64,000 bases of DNA. It comes from Phaeosaccion multiseriatum (Eukaryota > Protista > Ochrophyta, other classes). The notes below the pieces were generated by a model. It was not told the origin of the DNA, searched no databases, and was given only the letters and a program-made list of their open reading frames with translations. The stretch is from NCBI GenBank assembly GCA_965112735.1, contig OZ218960.1, forward strand, positions 2,914,001 through 2,978,000, read 5' to 3'. This document shows positions 5,553 to 13,494 of this stretch, piece after piece (position 1 is the stretch's first letter; each line of letters begins with the position of its first letter). A program made the translations under genes and the position numbers.

Positions 5553-6646
5553 CACAACGCCCCTCCCAATAGAACCTGAGCAAGGTGGACAATGTGATCA
5601 GAGGCGCCGCACACCTCGTCGACCACACCTCTCTCAGGGAGTGCGTGACGGGTATAGTGCCCATTCGCATCTGGACAGGGGTGGCCAAGGTGCTCAAAAC
5701 GTCCTACAAGGGCGCGAATGAGGATGGGCTCAAACTTGTCCGAGAGGGGGTGCAGCATGCGGTACTGCGGCCCGGTCTCATGAACTTCCCTGTGTGGACA
5801 CATGCGCTTCACTCGGCGGCCTATGTGTTGGCCTTTTTCGGCCCGGAGGAGGAGTACGATTCGTTCCGAGAGGTGTTCAATGCCAACACCGCCGACACCT
5901 CCAAGCTGCCCGACCGCAGCGCCATTTTCTCGGGGGAGGGTATTTGCCAAACGGGCAGCAACTGCACGGCCGTCTCCAAATGGCTTTCTCGGTGTGCTGC
6001 TAACATGGACTGCAACAGCAACAACAATCTTCTGCTGGAGGAGAAGATGCGTGACGAGGCCGGGGCGGCTGCTGCGACTTCTCAATTTCAGAGTCAGAGT
6101 AGTCAATTCTCTTCCACTTCGGAGGGATTTGTGGGGCCGAGTGCGCAGTCCTTCGTGCCCCCTAACAGGGACGCCATTGAAGGCTCCCGCGCGCGGTGCC
6201 CGCTTTCGCTCAAGCAGACACAGGAGGAGCAGAATGAGGTGTTGCTACAACCGCAGAATATGCTTCGGGACCTGAGCACAGGGAGTACTGATATGATGAT
6301 GGCGGCAGCAGCAGCAGCGGCAGGAGCAGCAGCGGCAGAAGGAGGAGGAGCAGGAGGAGGAGGGGGAGGAGGAGGAGGGGGGGGGGATGAGTTTGGGGAG
6401 GATCCACTGCAGTTCTCGGACCTGGACAATGAGCTTGTGGAGTTGGGAGAGATGAACTTACCGGAGCTGGATGGCATGGAGGTGGACAGAGCGGAGGGGG
6501 TGGAGGGGGTGGGGGGAGATCAGGGAGCAGCGTGTACCGAGGAGGAGGGGGAGGAGGAACTGGTGCAGGTGCTGCAGGCTTCGTTTGGCATGCCGGGCAT
6601 GGTGTCGAGGGAGAACAGTTTCTCCAATGCGCTGCTGTCGGCATAG
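3192..6646 (+). CDS. Zn(II)2Cys6 binuclear-cluster transcription factor, 4 exons (3192-3445, 4016-4553, 4825-5238, 5573-6646)
   Basis: ACDWCTRRKRKCDGKAPCRNCLEMNLGSSC fits C-X2-C-X6-C-X5-C-X2-C-X8-C, followed by basic KSGRKKRK across the splice. Acidic C-terminal region is activation-domain-like. All junctions are GT-AG and in phase. Confidence 0.85.
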
Positions 6647-7177
6647 CGGTGCTTACCTGCATCGAAACGGGGGAGGGGGAGGGAAGGAGGTATGGGGGAT
6701 TTGGGTATAAGGAGCTAGAGCGGTGGCCGGAACAAGTGAAGCAAAGCACGGGAGCCGCTGGGCTTGATTTTTTATACTTCGTAGTATTGATTTATTTTTG
6801 TACTGACGGGCGAGAGGCCGCGTTGTGCAAGTGTGCATAGGAGGAGGGGGAGGGGCGAGGGGTTTTTGGGAGGGGAACAGAGGGTGCAGGAGCGCGTTTA
6901 GACTATACAATACCACGTTTGTAAGACTAAAAGCAAGTTACTTTCTACGGTGTTTTCATATGTGTTACTCACTTTTCCGGGGCATACGTAAGTAAGCAAG
7001 GAGTGGAGGGGGAGAGAGGGTGTGTGTGTTATTATGGAGTGGTGGGCAGCGGCTGATCACGTTCAAAAACGAGTGAAAGAAAGGGTTTCCGAGCTGCCAT
7101 TTTTGTTTCTTTGAAATTTGACATCCCACTATCCCCACTCGCCCCTGGCTCCTTCTTTAGACCCCTTGCGTTGGGGT

Positions 7178-7786
7178 ATGCTGTCCTCTTCGGAAATGAG
7201 TGCTTGGGGGGTCGGCAGCAGTGGCACCAGCAGTACCAGCCCTCTCTCAGCCCACCTGTTGCTCAGAAGAGAGGAGACAACGAGCAGACGGAATGCCCTC
7301 TTGTCTTTGCGCGGAGGAGGCGGGGCAGTGAAGAAGAGGAAGAAGGCACGGTCTGCGAAATCAGCGGCAGCAGCAGCAGCGGAAGTAGGGGGAGCCTCGG
7401 GAAGAGGCGAAGGAGCCGGGGCGGCAGCAGTACGAGTTGGAAGGAGGCGGCGTAGTGTGCGGGGTCGGCGGCGGCGTGGGGGAACGCCCCCAACCATACC
7501 TCAGTTGATTCTCAAGGGCCTCGCTCTACCCATCGTTTTGGTGGTAAGCTTGCTGCAGAGCTTGCTGTCCTTAGTCAGCCCTGCCTACCGCCGGAGGAGG
7601 AAGGAGCGCCGCGCCGCCGGCCTCCTGGAGAAGAGGCAGCAGTCTTTGGCCAGCGAGCCCACTAACGCGCTGGAGAGTCGCATGACGAGCGCGCAGGTAC
7701 TGCAGCGGCGCAAGAAAGTCGGTGTGATGCATTCTTTAATCGATATCCCCGCCGCCCCAGCAGCGCGGAAGGGTGGATGAGGGTAG
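7178..7786 (+). CDS. Selenoprotein K/S-like single-TM protein; TGA 7778-7780 read as Sec (C-terminus ...RKGGUG*)
   Basis: One hydrophobic helix (LILKGLALPIVLVVSLLQSLLSLVSP) and a basic tail ending GGT GGA TGA GGG TAG TGA = G-G-U-G-stop-stop. SECIS-like hairpin about 240 nt downstream. Start codon uncertain. Confidence 0.75.
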
Positions 7787-8015
7787 TGAGAAGGCCAGGG
7801 CATGAGGGAAGGGGGTGCGGTGATGGGGGGATGAAGAGGAACAGAGCCGACGGGATTTACCTGCTGTTCTCCTCCCCCCCCCCTCCTCCCTCTTTGTATG
7901 CTCTGACTTTCTCACAACCTGGACAAGCTTGACACATGCACAGCAGAGTACAGGCACTGTCCATTCTTTTTGTACATACACGTAGAGCCGTGCACGCCTC
8001 ATCACCCCCATACGC

Positions 8016-8080
8016 CTGCGGAATGACGAGCCAGCAAAGAATGACCAGCAAAGGTCGCGGACTGGCTCCGATCACAGCAG
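8016..8080 (+). promoter_or_regulatory. SECIS element (type II) in the 3' UTR of the SelK/S-like gene
   Basis: ATGA 8023-8026; helix II GAGCCAG 8028-8034 / CTGGCTC 8062-8068; AA 8040-8041; minihelix TGACC 8042-8046 / GGTCG 8053-8057; CGAT 8069-8072; helix I CTGC 8016-8019 / GCAG 8077-8080. Confidence 0.72.
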
Positions 8081-9080
8081 TAGCACGGGAGGGGGGGGGG
8101 GCAGAGAGCGAGCGGCAGGGTGGGGCAGGCAGGGTCCGCACCCGTTCAGGTGTGGGGGGGGCGCTGCTTTCCCAAAAAAAACAAAAAAACAAAATCAAAA
8201 ATCCTAAATCCCAAATCCCGACTTTTCGCATACACCCAATTCAATTTGTTGATAGAGTGAATAACTGATTGAATGCATCTCCGCATGGATTTAAATCACT
8301 ACAAAAGTGCATTCCAACATTTCAACGCTGCTCGCTCGCCACAGTAATATCCCTCGCTCTCCTCTTTAATCTCCACACAACCTCTCCGAGCACTCCAGGT
8401 CCGCTCCTCCTCTGCCACAATGTACTACTTTGGCCCGCCTTGCCCGACTGCCCTGACCTTCCCTCCCACCACCTCCCCTTCCCTTCATCTCCGCAGTCCT
8501 AGCCCCTCACCCTGAGAGAGTCTCCGTTGCTTCCTGTGACGACACGTAGGGCACGCTACTCGGACCCGCTGACGCCCCCATTCGGGTCCCACCTCCTCGA
8601 TCTCCAACGAGGACCTATGCATCACTCGTACCCACAACAGATGCAATACAGAACCCTTGCAGCTCTCGCTCGCCACCTCCAGCGTGGTCTCGAGCCTTAC
8701 GCCACTCTCCTGCGGCGGCAGTCCTCTCTCCTCTCGTGTTGGTGCACGTGGCGTCGCCAGGCGAATGAGATCGAAGGGCGTCTGCGAGGGGAGGCGGAGA
8801 CAATGGCTGTTGCCTGCCTCAGTCGGCCGGTCAAAGTCTGCACTCAGACCTGTCTTGCGGACCACCTCACCTCCAAAGAGTGCGACATTGAAGCTCCTTC
8901 CCGCCGTCCTCCTCGTTCATATCATCAGTGTGTCCGCTTCGCCTTAAGAGTACTCCTCCTCCTTCTACTCAATAATCCTCACTCCAAGGCCTTTTGAAGA
9001 ACTCCACTTCAAGGCCTTCTGGCAGCTGAGCAGAGAGCTTGTATCCCTCCAAAGCCTCGAGTCGCTCCAGACCTGCAGGT

Positions 9081-9430
9081 AGATCCGATAGGGGCTGGTT
9101 ATACTCCCCTCTGGAGGTGGGAGGGGAGTATAACCAGCCCCTATCGGATCTGCCGGACGGGCTGAAGGAGCTGACGTTTGCCTATGGCTCGAAGTTTAAT
9201 CATCCGTTAACCCTGCCTGCCTCTCTTCGGACTCTGAAGGAGCTGACATTTGCCTATGGCTCGAAGCTTAATCATCCGCTAACCCTGCCTGCCTCTGGGG
9301 AGTCCGAAGAGAGGTAGGCAGGGTTAACGGATGATTAAACTTCGTCCGAAGAGAGGCAGGCAGGGATAACGGATGATTAAACTTCGAGCCATAGGCAAAT
9401 ACCAGCTCCTTCAGCCCGTCCGGCAGACTG
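9081..9430. pseudogene. Scrambled FNIP-repeat (LRR-like) fragments in direct and inverted orientation
   Basis: Plus strand reads GGEYNQPLSDLPDGLKELTFAYGSKFNHPLTLPASL with the unit partly duplicated. Copies at 9301-9428 are inverted. Perfect 31-bp inverted repeat 9081-9111 / 9121-9151. Confidence 0.7.
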
Positions 9431-10381
9431 AGAGCCATGTCTGGATGCCCGCAGCATGGGGCAATCACCAAGAGGGTGTAGCCTGCGCGCTGCATCACGC
9501 GATCGAATGGTGCGCCGGCGTCCAGAAGGTAGTCCAAGACAGGAGGTAGTCCAAGACAGGAGGTAGTCCAAGACAGGAGGTAGTCCAAGACAGGAGGTAG
9601 TCCAAGACAGTGTGGTGCCCTTCTTGAGCCGCGAGATAGACCGGGGTGGCTCCTGTGTCGCCGTCCACCTCCACGCTCGCGCCCACAAAGAGAAGGCGCT
9701 TCACCGCTGCAGCGTGACCATTTTGGGAGGCGAAGGAAAGAGCAGTCTCAACCGCTCCTACCGTGTGTGTGGGGTATCAAGCTCTGCCCCTGCGACTAGG
9801 AGGGTAGTGTCCAGAGTTGCTCCTTGGCCGCTCCCCGCCGCAGCGATGATGGGTGTGTTCCCGTCGTCTGCCGCAGTGAGGTTGGGCCCCCCTGCGAGGA
9901 GCTTCTCCACCAAGCATGTGTATCCATGTTGGGCGGCAGCGAAGAGTGGAGTGCACCCCTTGTAGGTCGGGATATCAACACCAGCGCGCACTGAGAGGAG
10001 CACGTCCACACACTCACGGCTCCCTCTGCATGCAGCGAAGAATAAGAGGCGTCGTCCCGTTGGCATTGGTCTGGTCGACTAAGCCCCCTGCCTCCAACAG
10101 CCTCTTTAGCACCTCAATCTCTATCGTAGTCGCAGGCCACGAGCAAAGGCGTCGTGTGTCCCTCCTCCCCAACCCGACTCGCATGGCTCGGGGAGGCCCC
10201 CTGCTGTAGCAGAGCATCTACGGCATCGAGTCGGCCGCATCCGAGAGCCCACTGTTCGGTGAAGCTGCCGCTCAAGAGGTTGCTCGAGGCTCTCCGACCC
10301 GTGCCTGGTCTTTAGGCTTTCCACCTTTGCTCTGATGCTCGCCACGCCCTCTCTGCCGTCAAGAGCCTCGCGCGAAGACAT
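9430..10381 (-). pseudogene. Ankyrin-repeat pseudogene (frameshifts and stops), joined to FNIP fragments
   Basis: Ankyrin motifs in shifting frames: GCTPLFAAAQHGYTCLVEKLL, GNTPIIAAAGSG, GATPVYLAAQEGHHTVLDYLL, LLEAGGLVDQTNANGTTPL. No introns explain the frame changes. Confidence 0.75.
9527..9610. repeat. 17-bp tandem repeat x5 (AGGTAGTCCAAGACAGG)
   Basis: Five consecutive copies inside the ankyrin pseudogene; the unit length is not a multiple of 3. Confidence 0.9.
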
Positions 10382-10767
10382 ACCGCCTGATGAAAGGGCA
10401 GGGAAGAAAGAGGAAAGGAAGGAATAGGGGATTAGATGTTAGATTTCCCGGGAAGGGTTCAAGGGGTGCGAGTCCCGACGGGGTGTGAAAGCTCTGTGAA
10501 CGCAAAAGGAAGCGGGCGACGGTTCATCATTTTATATTTCATAGCGAAGGGGTGGTTCAGGTGTTGGGTGGTTCAGGTGTTAAAAGAGGACATAGACAGA
10601 GCACATATACCTCAGAACTGACTGTATGGCGCATGACGAGGATGTCCAGACAAGAAAAGAGGGGGGAGAAGGGAAGGAAAAGGCGATGGGAGCGTCGCCA
10701 TTTGAAGGCCGAACTGACAACAAGCGATACCAGCCAGCCTCCTGCTCATGTTTATCAAAAAGTAGCT

Positions 10768-13494
10768 ATGCTTGGCTTCGTTGCGCTCGCCGCCGCCGGT
10801 GGGAGTGCTACAAGGGATCAAAGCCCTTCCGCTGCGTTGCTGAGCACCCTACCTCAGCTGAGGCTTAGCTGGTCTGCCACCTCTGTTGGCACAAAAAAGA
10901 GAGGTTGTACACGCCTGCTGGCAGGGAGAGGAGAAAGTGTGGAAAAAGGCGGGGGGGAGACGGTACAGTGGGACTGGGGAGAAGCGGATCTGGGGCGAGG
11001 CGTTTACCAGGGCCGGAGCTACTCCAAGGAAGAAGCCTATGCGCCAATTGCCGTCTCAGGAGAACCCTCGAAGCGACCCTCAGGGGGGCAGGGGGTGATG
11101 GGCAGGAGCAGTGGCGGGGCGAGCGATCGAGGAATGGCCAAGAAGCAGATTGCTCTGGTACGCCGGCTCCAGACGCTGGGTAGAGAGAAGCGATGGAAGG
11201 AGGTGGCGCGCGCCCTGCAGGTTGCCAAGCAGGAGCAGGGTGTTTTGTTCAACGACCGAGTGTATGGTGCGGCCATCCACGCTCTGGGCCAGTGCGAGCG
11301 GTGGAGAGGCGCAGTGGCCTTGCTTGAGGAGATGCAGGAGGATGAGAGCGGCTTGTTAGAGCCAAATGAGATCCACTTTCGCTCCGTCATTGCCACTTGC
11401 GCGAGGCAGGGGCAGCTGGAGACGGCAGAACGTGTGCTGCTGCAAGATATGACGGAGGCCGAGTGCGGGGCTGACTTGGACGCATTCAACGCGCTCTTGC
11501 TCGAGTACGGCCGAGCAGGACGGGTGGGCAAGGTGCTGGCCCTGTTTCAGGCAATGGAGGCTCAGGGCATTGTGCCAGACCCATTCAGCTACAACGCGCT
11601 CATCAGTGCCCACCTAAAGAGCGGGGAGGTGGAGCAGGCGGTTCAAACCCTTCGTGGGATGCGCAAGGGCAGCACCATTAAAACCGTGGGAGTGGAAGTG
11701 ATGCCCACTACCGTCAACTACAACACTGTCATTGCTGGCCTGGGGAGGGCGGGCCTCGCTCGTGATACGCTGGCATTACTGCGTGAAATGCGAGAGATAG
11801 GTCCCCCACCCTCGGACAGGACGTTCTCTGCCGTCGTTACCGCTTGCAGCAAGGCCGGCTTGTGGAGGGAAGGCATCATTGTGCTGAAGGAAATGTCGAG
11901 GAAGGTGAAGGAGGGAGGCAGCGAGGGGGCTATCCAGAGAGGCAGCGAGACAAGCAGTAGTAGTGGGGGGATGAGCTGTGCGGTGTACTCCGTACTGATG
12001 ACCGCGTGTATCAAGGCGGGGCAGCACTCCGCGGCGGTCGAAGTGTTTGACGCGATGCACAAGAGGGACGGTGTACAGCCCGATGCCCAGGCCTACGGCA
12101 CACTCCTCACCGCCCATGGACAGCTGGGTGAGTATGCGCATGCGAGCACGAGGCTCGGTGAGATGCGCTCGGCAGGTATTACGCCCAATCTCGTGGTGCA
12201 TAACAGCCTTGTCTTTGCGCTGCGCAACGCCGGGCACTTGGAAAAGGCAGTGGATGCGCTGGCGGAAATGGCAGTGGACGACCTCGCCCCTGACGCTCTC
12301 ATGTGCAGCAACTTGGTGGCGGCGTGTGGCAAGGCAGGCAAGCTCAAACTCGCGCTGCGAGTGCTTGAGGTGATGAAGCAGAGCACCCAGCAGAGCACCC
12401 AGCAGAGCACCCAGCAGAACGGATCGAGCCCGAGCACCCCGCCTGGCCGGGTAATTTACAATGCGCTGATTGCAGCTTGCGGAGTCGCAAAGGACTGCGA
12501 CAAGGCCTTTGAGCTCTATGCCGAGATGCGCGCGAGTGGCGTGGAGGCAGACATCGTCACGTTCAACTCACTCATCACGGCCTGTGGCAAGGCCGGCCAG
12601 CCCGACAAGGCCGCTGCGGTGCTGGAGGACATGGTCCAGAGTGGAGGTGCCGTACTGCCCGAGGCCATCACGTACAATGCCCTCATGAGAGCCTACGCAC
12701 TCGCGGGGCAGTGCGACGCGGCCTTTCGTGTCTTTGATGAGATGCAGGCGGTGGGGGGCCTCAAACCGGACTTTTACAGCTTTGACGCGCTCATCACGGC
12801 GTGTACAGTAGCGGAGGACCACGCACGCGCACTTGACACGCTTGTCGTCATGACCTCTACATACGGCCTCTGCCCCAACATTATCATCCTGAACAAGCTT
12901 GTGAAGGCGAGCGCCTCGAGAGGAGAACACCACATTGCCCTCGCCCTGCTCAAGGAGATGCGAGCGGCGACTTGGGGTGTGCATCCCGACTTCACCACGT
13001 ACCAGACACTGTTGGACGCCCTCTTCCTCTCGGCGTCGGGGGGGGACAGGGTGGGTTGCACGGAGTTGTGTGACGAGGTGTATGCCCAGGCATTGGCAGA
13101 GGGGGCGGTTTCACACTGGGCCGAGGAGAAGGAGAAGAAGAGCAGTGCTGCTGCTGCTGCTGTATCACCAACTGGTGGAGGTGGGGGTGGTGGTACGGCA
13201 GTTTCAACGGAGGGCGGGACGGTTTCCGAGTCGAGGAGCAGGAGTAGGACGACGACGAGGAGGACGAAAAGGAGGAGGGTGGACTTGCGCGGCTGGTCCC
13301 ACTCGATGAGTCGTGCAGCCCTTCGCCATGTGGTCTTTACGGAGCAGGTCCGAGGGGAGGTGGAGGTGGAGGCGGGCAAGGGAGGAGGGGTGCTTCATGG
13401 ACTGGTCATGACCTTTCTCAGCCACGATCTCGGGCTGTCGGCCACGGTGGAGGCAGGCTCAAGGGGCGTGATTGTGTTCCAGGTGGATGATTGA
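10768..13494 (+). CDS. Pentatricopeptide-repeat protein with C-terminal SMR-like domain, intronless
   Basis: Roughly 15+ 35-aa PPR motifs (e.g. PDPFSYNALISAHLKSGEVEQAVQTL, DIVTFNSLITACGKAGQPDKAAAVL). C-terminal VDLRGWSHSMSRAALR..VEAGKG..LVMTFL is SMR-like. Start could be 10633 or 10768. Confidence 0.88.
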   Translation: MLGFVALAAAGGSATRDQSPSAALLSTLPQLRLSWSATSVGTKKRGCTRLLAGRGESVEKGGGETVQWDWGEADLGRGVYQGRSYSKEEAYAPIAVSGEPSKRPSGGQGVMGRSSGGASDRGMAKKQIALVRRLQTLGREKRWKEVARALQVAKQEQGVLFNDRVYGAAIHALGQCERWRGAVALLEEMQEDESGLLEPNEIHFRSVIATCARQGQLETAERVLLQDMTEAECGADLDAFNALLLEYGRAGRVGKVLALFQAMEAQGIVPDPFSYNALISAHLKSGEVEQAVQTLRGMRKGSTIKTVGVEVMPTTVNYNTVIAGLGRAGLARDTLALLREMREIGPPPSDRTFSAVVTACSKAGLWREGIIVLKEMSRKVKEGGSEGAIQRGSETSSSSGGMSCAVYSVLMTACIKAGQHSAAVEVFDAMHKRDGVQPDAQAYGTLLTAHGQLGEYAHASTRLGEMRSAGITPNLVVHNSLVFALRNAGHLEKAVDALAEMAVDDLAPDALMCSNLVAACGKAGKLKLALRVLEVMKQSTQQSTQQSTQQNGSSPSTPPGRVIYNALIAACGVAKDCDKAFELYAEMRASGVEADIVTFNSLITACGKAGQPDKAAAVLEDMVQSGGAVLPEAITYNALMRAYALAGQCDAAFRVFDEMQAVGGLKPDFYSFDALITACTVAEDHARALDTLVVMTSTYGLCPNIIILNKLVKASASRGEHHIALALLKEMRAATWGVHPDFTTYQTLLDALFLSASGGDRVGCTELCDEVYAQALAEGAVSHWAEEKEKKSSAAAAAVSPTGGGGGGGTAVSTEGGTVSESRSRSRTTTRRTKRRRVDLRGWSHSMSRAALRHVVFTEQVRGEVEVEAGKGGGVLHGLVMTFLSHDLGLSATVEAGSRGVIVFQVDD

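Follow-up and report, generated by a model that had tools for sequence, protein, structure and literature searches.

Selenoprotein S (SelS, SELENOS) ends in the tetrapeptide GGUG, where U denotes selenocysteine (Sec). Few eukaryotic selenoproteins are more widespread than selenoprotein K (SelK, SELENOK), which green algae also have, and algae are already known to possess both SelK and SelS (PMC2375036, PMC7539508). The algal survey of PMC7539508 was BLAST-based, and SELENOK and SELENOS were among the least widely detected families in it. In mammalian selenoproteins with a C-terminal Sec, a stem-loop often lies right after the stop codon, and the stem-loop of SelS damps recoding (PMC6844570). 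The present analysis concerns a locus in 64,000 nucleotides of DNA from the ochrophyte Phaeosaccion multiseriatum (contig OZ218960.1, positions 2,914,001 to 2,978,000 of the forward strand). This whole stretch is called the window, and positions are counted from its first letter. In the window, a frame open from ATG 7178 runs into a TGA at 7778–7780, and a hairpin that resembles a selenocysteine insertion sequence (SECIS) follows in the 3′ flank.

We propose that the locus probably encodes a lineage-specific selenoprotein of SelS/SelK-like design, made by SECIS-dependent recoding of UGA 7778. It is a good candidate and not a proven case, and it is not demonstrable as a member of the SelK or SelS family.

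The last exon and its UGA

The frame that starts at ATG 7178 stays open to GGA 7777. It then reads TGA (7778–7780), GGG (7781–7783), TAG (7784–7786) and TGA (7787–7789). The first TGA, on the plus strand, is the candidate Sec codon and would specify the penultimate residue; the coding signal stops there. If the UGA is recoded, the GGG TAG at 7781–7786 (+) would supply the last codon, for Gly, and the true stop, and the C-terminus would read ...PAARKGG-U-G. The KGG-TGA-GGG-TAG ending had been described in a first-pass annotation made from the letters alone, together with an LSLRGG motif and a K/R-rich stretch in the open reading frame (ORF). A letter-by-letter check found all coordinates and motifs of the ending to be correct, and both ORF features are present. 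No usable splice donor lies near TGA 7778, as GTGGAT (7773) and GTAGTG (7783) are both without G at position +5.

Codon statistics place a coding exon immediately before this TGA. The codon log-odds score was trained on 2,080 codons from pentatricopeptide-repeat (PPR), SepSecS, SelO and SelD exons. The segment 7505–7777 (+) scores +0.21 bits/codon in the candidate frame, with a third-position GC content (GC3) of 0.77, and the other five frames are negative. For known or likely exons the scores range from +0.16 to +0.28 bits/codon, which is comparable. The log-odds value of the segment stands at the 97th percentile among random frames and at the 87th among stop-free frames. The codon-position GC of 7478–7777 (.62/.50/.75) has a signature matching that of the window's PPR gene (.63/.50/.70). 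That reference gene is a single open frame of 980 codons at 10552–13494 (+) and encodes a pentatricopeptide-repeat protein (PPR_2, 268 bits). The coding signal comes on at about 7500 and goes off at about 7780. Beyond the stop all frames are negative; the signature is gone after 7790, and no frame is coding-like for at least 270 nt downstream. These results support 7505–7777 as a real coding exon ending at the TGA.

The 5′ part of the gene is modelled from splice sites and composition. The segment 7178–7384 (+) is a possible, uncertain first coding exon, i.e., an open frame with ATGs at 7178 or 7196 that would contribute 63–69 residues rich in Ser, Ala, Arg and Lys. Its codon log-odds is about zero (+0.04 bits/codon) and its GC3 is 0.62, which is neutral. 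The next segment, 7385–7504 (+), scores −0.305 bits/codon, with a GC3 of 0.50. It opens with a usable donor, GAA/GTAGGG at 7385, which has G at +5 as do 10 of the 10 donors inferred for the genome. It closes with a strong acceptor in phase 0, CCCCCAACCATACCTCAG/TTG at 7504/7505, formed by a pyrimidine tract and CAG. The anti-coding usage, the usable GT donor and the strong acceptor together indicate that these 120 nt are probably an in-frame GT...CAG intron, and it is because the segment is stop-free that the ORF track runs through it. The simplest model would have exons 7178–7384 and 7505–7786 with a stop-free intron of 120 nt between them. An upstream exon not seen here is just as possible. 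The unusual N-terminal extension proposed in the first-pass annotation is thereby reduced to a doubtful one, and under both models some of it would not be protein: 7385–7504 is anti-coding and probably intronic, and 7178–7384 is neutral.

Several observations on the 5′ side and on read coverage stand beside this model. An upstream ORF at 5585–6646 (+) has 353 codons, a clear coding signature and a poly-Ala/poly-Gly stretch; it is in the candidate's frame, ends in a TAG at 6644–6646 and matches no Pfam family. Between 6646 and the start of the candidate ORF, the next stop in frame is again a TGA (7112–7114). Four read runs contain the locus, all of them DNA and all from one sample. A read "joint" from 6558 to 7362 proved to be an artefact, as its sides consist of merely 18–21 letters in GGAGG-type repeats. 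TGTAA shows no enrichment as a poly(A) signal (43 occurrences against 39 expected).

The exon 7505–7777 encodes a transmembrane (TM) helix and then a basic tail that ends in KGG. The TM core lies at 7520–7576 (+), corresponding to ORF residues 115–133 (LALPIVLVVSLLQSLLSLV), and has a Kyte-Doolittle 19-residue mean of 2.42. The 64-residue tail after it is rich in Arg, Lys and Gln, carries a net charge of +11, and counts 4 Gly and 3 Pro among its residues. Cys is absent from the whole ORF. In a single-sequence AlphaFold2 model, a helix extends over residues 107–158, of which the TM segment is the first part, with pLDDT values of 73–89 in the TM segment. Outside it, at a low pLDDT of 53–60, the model has the rest of the long helix, a second helix and an unstructured end of 16 residues that would carry KGG-U-G. 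As strongly basic sequence lies on both sides of the TM segment, either orientation in the membrane could apply if the N-terminal region is real.

Selenocysteine decoding and the candidate SECIS

The window comes from contig 11 of a genome assembly that has 67 Mb in 22 contigs and genes with spliceosomal introns. The first-pass annotation had pointed to the Sec machinery of the genome as a check on a selenoprotein reading, and three parts of such machinery are found. The Rfam cut-off is passed by ten tRNA-Sec genes, of which nine form a tandem array (C12:2660299–2661653; C10:1901872–1901957). SepSecS is present in three exons (203+106+89 bits) and SelD in two (85+83 bits). PSTK was not detected in the exon-by-exon search of the genome, and the search for eEFSec with TIGR00475 was swamped by EF-Tu/EF1A matches. 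These last two outcomes are unimportant, since three working selenoprotein genes imply the remaining machinery.

Two of the three genes, the SelM/Sep15-like and the SelO gene, also serve as controls. A SelM/Sep15-like selenoprotein has an in-frame TGA in CPAU-KLKRLPEVKRFI (C8:2105046–2108201, local position 1296); its SECIS is a canonical type I element with a helix 1 of 7 bp, at local 1902–1945, 194 nt past the stop. A SelO selenoprotein ends in FLS-U-SS after a short last exon (C13:3246800–3251000, local 326), and its SECIS, at local 617–773 and 291 nt past the UGA, has an apical stem of about 120 nt (−75 kcal/mol). In an MsrA selenoprotein, the catalytic GUFWGP is encoded in an 18-nt microexon, GATGATTCTGGGGTCCCG, which is preceded by CAG and followed by GTGAGT (C11:805000–814999, minus strand, near C11:811,438). 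No SECIS was found 3′ of the GPx, MsrA and SelD genes within the flanks examined. The genome clearly decodes Sec.

The consensus features of curated SECIS elements are an A-UGA/GA core, a G:C pair above the quartet, a set AA spacing, helix 3, an apical loop and helix 1 (PMC2647825, PMC3753652). The candidate type II SECIS is found at 8014–8084 (+) as the local minimum free energy (MFE) fold, in which 8014–8019 pairs with 8077–8084 to form helix 1 and 8047–8052 is the apical loop. ATGA at 8023–8026 lies in the core. There, A8023-UGA-C8027 faces C8069-GA-U8072 to give a quartet of U.U, G.A, A.G and C.C, the GA partner being carried by CGAT at 8069–8072. As in the consensus, an unpaired A stands directly 5′ of the UGA. 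In helix 2, GAGCCAG (8028–8034) pairs perfectly with CTGGCTC (8062–8068) over 7 bp, which puts a G:C pair directly above the quartet. The AA at 8040–8041 is 13 nt past ATGA, that is, 12 nt past AUGAN, where 10–13 is expected. TGACC (8042–8046) and GGTCG (8053–8057) form a helix 3 of 5 bp, one of them U.G, closed by the 6-nt loop AGCAAA. Outside the hairpin, CCGTGC at 7988–7993 is complementary to GCACGG at 8083–8088. The ATGA, the AA, the GAGCCAG/CTGGCTC and TGACC/GGTCG helices, the CGAT partner and the outer pairing had been cited in the first-pass annotation, and each proved to be correct; its remark that the upper part of helix 2 is imperfect also holds, as CAAAG and CGGA face each other unpaired.

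The fold was scored with ViennaRNA at −24.1 kcal/mol (z −2.13; 5 of 200 shuffles were as good). The 5′ arm begins with ATGACGAGC, exactly as does the SelO SECIS, and the SelM-like SECIS has nearly the same start (ATGACGGAGC). The candidate SECIS lies 245 nt from the UGA and 237 nt from the stop, a distance that matches those of the two proven controls of the genome. To summarize, on its sequence features the element is a plausible but imperfect SECIS.

Covariance models do not help to decide its status. Rfam model RF00031 gave no match on a 2-kb segment, a 106-nt segment or the genome as a whole; since the proven SelM-like SECIS escapes it too, this result is uninformative. A single-sequence model built on the SelM-like SECIS gave the candidate 3.1 bits in the right register, and the candidate is absent from its matches in the window; this model missed the SelO control entirely and is therefore uninformative too.

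The proposed mechanism is as follows. A nuclear gene would encode a small single-pass membrane protein, the last exon of which ends in KGG-UGA-GGG-UAG. We infer that the SECIS-like kink-turn hairpin at about 8014–8084 lies in the 3′ untranslated region of the same mRNA, where it would draw in the SECIS-binding protein along with the elongation factor specific for Sec and the Sec-tRNA. UGA 7778 would then be decoded as Sec, giving a protein that ends in ...KGG-Sec-Gly. Should recoding fail, or selenium be scarce, translation would stop at the UGA and the product would be two residues shorter, as in SelS. In the protein, the TM helix would be prolonged by a long helical stretch of basic character, and a flexible tail of 16 residues would come last, holding a single selenol close to the membrane surface. 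If SelS and SelK are a guide, the protein may act as a membrane-tethered cofactor in redox or acyl-transfer reactions, or as an adaptor.

A second structure abuts the UGA. A hairpin of 140 nt with a purine arm and a pyrimidine arm extends over 7781–7920 (+), beginning directly after the UGA and including the TAG. Its MFE is −74.1 kcal/mol, and its z-score of −3.84, with 0 of 200 shuffles as good, has to be read with caution, since segregated purine and pyrimidine tracts inflate z. The hairpin is single copy in the genome, and Rfam gives it only weak, miRNA-like hairpin scores. No UGA-proximal hairpin is found in the SelO control gene of the genome (z +1.06). By analogy with the mammalian stem-loops, the 7781–7920 hairpin may modulate recoding, which we treat as a lead and not as a finding.

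Chance, relatives and rival explanations

The frequency of SECIS-like hairpins was estimated with two scanners. The tuned scanner, modelled on the candidate's own feature set, was run on both strands of the window (128 kb) and on Markov-2 simulations. The candidate is its sole match in the window. Its background per 128 kb is 0.18–0.45 for the core only and 0.001 for the core plus helix 3, helix 1 and the U.U pair, a combination that arose once in 1006 simulated sets of 128 kb. The neutral scanner catches the candidate and the two proven SECIS elements of the genome; it reports 9 sites in the real window, among which the candidate alone has 7/7 pairs. Depending on which of these backgrounds is used, a SECIS-like hairpin would be expected within 1 kb by chance with a frequency from about 6% down to far less. 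The hairpin alone is thus only moderately improbable. Chance becomes unlikely because the hairpin stands behind a coding-like exon that ends in GG-TGA-G-stop, and we judge it improbable that coincidence accounts jointly for the hairpin and for a coding-like TM exon with this ending.

A number of points weigh against a selenoprotein. The tuned background overstates significance, as the tuned scanner misses both positive controls, and the neutral background is high, with 7.3 sites in 128 kb (about 0.057 per kb of each strand). Curated SECIS elements have a helix 2 of 11–16 bp, and SECISearch3 penalises consecutive mismatches (PMC2647825, PMC3753652). Here helix 2 consists of 7 contiguous standard pairs, possibly with G8039–C8058 in addition, over a span of 12 nt, and 3–4 consecutive positions are non-standard (C.A, A.G, A.G, A.C). 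The base before GA is C, where the consensus has K (G or U). At this KGAW position the candidate has CGAU, departing at K and agreeing at W, and both proven SECIS elements of the genome have UGAC, agreeing at K and departing at W; KGAW is a majority consensus and not an invariant one. The start codon and the first exon are uncertain. The run index has no RNA run for the organism. Finally, no search returned a homologue with Sec, Cys or any other residue at the UGA position.

The searches for relatives used pieces before the TGA only; the piece after it is a single residue. The 200-aa ORF and a 100-aa C-terminal piece had zero matches in a word index of 5.8 billion proteins, and exhaustive phmmer against 1.84 billion representatives likewise returned none. 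Metagenome contigs gave zero matches to protein patterns and to a SECIS pattern, and sequences of the PDB zero relatives at E ≤ 10. In the ESM Atlas the best score, 0.79, is within noise, and the "recognition" value is low. hmmscan against Pfam-A found no family at E ≤ 10, hence neither PF10961 (SelK_SelG) nor PF06936 (Selenoprotein S). Within the genome the locus is single copy, and a protein search found no paralogue of the exon. Short, fast-evolving tails are hard to detect, so relatives at 30–35% identity may have escaped these searches.

The homologues with an aligned Cys or TGA that the first-pass annotation had looked to were thus absent from the protein, metagenome, PDB and Atlas searches, and none of these collections contains a protein that covers the exon. 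Its view of the gene as a divergent member of the SelK/S family stands in part. The Sec machinery, the coding exon, the SECIS core, the single TM segment, the basic tail and the penultimate Sec codon agree with that view, but PF10961 and PF06936 are unmatched, there are zero homologues, the tail is not Gly-rich and the ORF has no Cys. Two leads to a SelK elsewhere in the genome were rejected: its PF10961 matches fall in low-complexity DNA encoding GGREGGRE, and in a TM protein matching PF10961 that appeared to end in DRGG-TGA, the TGA belongs to a GTGAGT splice donor.

The locus might be an ordinary small membrane-protein gene that stops at TGA 7778, the hairpin and the GG-TGA-G-stop arrangement being coincidental. 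That a minimal SECIS core arises by chance some 0.057 times per kb per strand, with 9 sites in the window, fits this explanation, as does the lack of any Sec or Cys homologue to back recoding. So do the substandard helix 2, the C at the K position (PMC2647825, PMC3753652), and the G-richness of the strand (GC skew +0.24), owing to which GGN codons are common. Coincidence nevertheless has to account for a good deal: the candidate alone of the 9 neutral sites has 7/7 pairs, and the full combination was met in 1 of 1006 simulated sets. Moreover, the strand of the hairpin is the right one, its distance is that found in real selenoprotein genes of the genome, and it has the shared ATGACG(G)AGC arm; the tetrapeptide would be GGUG of the SelS type with Sec as its penultimate residue. 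We regard an ordinary stop as unlikely.

It is less probable still that the ORF is spurious, i.e., a chance open frame in GC-rich, low-complexity DNA from which nothing is translated. The exon 7505–7777 has the codon usage of the genome in exactly one of six frames, at a level like that of the PPR, SepSecS, SelO and SelD exons; its translation has a clean TM helix and an amphipathic basic helix, neither of them low-complexity sequence; and a strong 3′ splice site sits exactly at the onset of the coding signal. Against these stand the abundance of long stop-free frames (22 ORFs of at least 150 aa in 16 kb), the two frames that are open together over 7111–7455, an N-terminal half without coding signature, and the lack of a homologue, of a Pfam family and of a high Atlas "recognition" value. 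We give the least credence of all to a bypass of the TGA, either by a splice that joins a donor upstream of 7778 to an exon further on or through use of the exon as an alternative last exon of the upstream gene (5585–6646). Many introns of the genome are short, the first exon is uncertain, and odd exon ends do occur in such genes, as shown by human SelK, in which a splice site abuts the stop codon (PMC3316567). Yet neither GTGGAT (7773) nor GTAGTG (7783) has the +5 G present in 10 of 10 inferred donors, no frame has a coding signal for at least 270 nt downstream, and the upstream ORF has its own TAG at 6644–6646, with non-coding composition after it.

Recoding of UGA 7778 in a lineage-specific selenoprotein is therefore the explanation that we prefer. 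A bolder version of it makes the protein the founding member of a lineage-specific family in which the SelS/SelK design was reached independently, with a short-stemmed SECIS (CGA core) and a 140-nt hairpin that modulates recoding; we consider this version doubtful. The interest of the candidate, which is moderate, lies in its being an orphan and in the atypical shortness of its helix 2. If the selenoprotein is real, the small membrane selenoproteins that have Sec at the C-terminus would gain an orphan gene, one invisible to homology-based surveys of selenoproteomes, and the SelS/SelK-type design would be shown not to depend on a sequence recognisable as SelK or SelS. The gene would also be a natural test case for the minimum length of SECIS helix 2 and for a possible tuning of recoding by a large hairpin next to the UGA. 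Otherwise the locus is a useful caution, since chance alone commonly yields a minimal SECIS core in this GC-rich genome, some 0.06 times per kb and strand.

Other features lie downstream in the window. The segment 9048–9430 is a nest of inverted repeats that encode FNIP-like units (LKELTFAYGSKFNHPLTLPASL) on both strands. The repeat arms measure 84 nt (9149–9232 and 9344–9427, 95% complementary) and 47 nt (9065–9111 and 9121–9167). In one read run, the contig word depth here is about 20,000, as against about 85 nearby, which marks a very high-copy element. A minisatellite with five copies of a 17-nt unit (GGAGGTAGTCCAAGACA) occupies 9523–9610, and an open frame on the minus strand at 9758–10066 looks ankyrin-repeat-like by eye (GxTPL...AA..G).

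Comparison with the type II SECIS, SelK and SelS

The tail of SelS is about 140 residues long, whereas that of the candidate has 64. The candidate SECIS shares with the type II consensus the A-UGA-N/N-GA-W core, the U.U pair, the G:Y pair, the AA, a 5-bp helix 3, a 6-nt loop and helix 1. It differs in that helix 2 has 7–8 standard pairs as against 11–16, in having C and not K before GA, and in going unscored by RF00031, a model to which the proven SelM-like element is likewise invisible. The hairpin at 7781–7920 differs from the SelS PSL/SPUR and from Sec redefinition elements of the SelN type in being far larger (about 140 nt, −74 kcal/mol) and in having arms made of purine and pyrimidine tracts.

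SelK (PF10961) resembles the candidate in its small size, its one TM segment and its basic tail without a redox-partner Cys; its Sec lies two to three residues from the end, and its SECIS is of type II (PMC6844570). The candidate differs from it in that the tail is predicted to be helical and, having 4 Gly and 3 Pro among its 64 residues, is not Gly/Pro-rich, and PF10961 is unmatched.

With regard to SelS (PF06936), sequence similarity is lacking, and the candidate possibly has a long basic N-terminal region. In human SelS, Cys174 and Sec188 form a selenosulfide (PMC3628699), whereas the candidate ORF is without any Cys. The likenesses to SelS lie in the overall design. SelS is a single-pass protein with a long cytosolic helix and then a disordered tail, its SECIS is of type II (PMC2647825), and a stem-loop, the PSL, lies right after its stop region (PMC6844570). 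Its Sec is penultimate, and failed recoding shortens it by two residues only (PMC6844570). With its TM segment, long helix, disordered tail and penultimate Sec, the modelled candidate resembles SelS in design more closely than it does the Gly/Pro-rich SelK.

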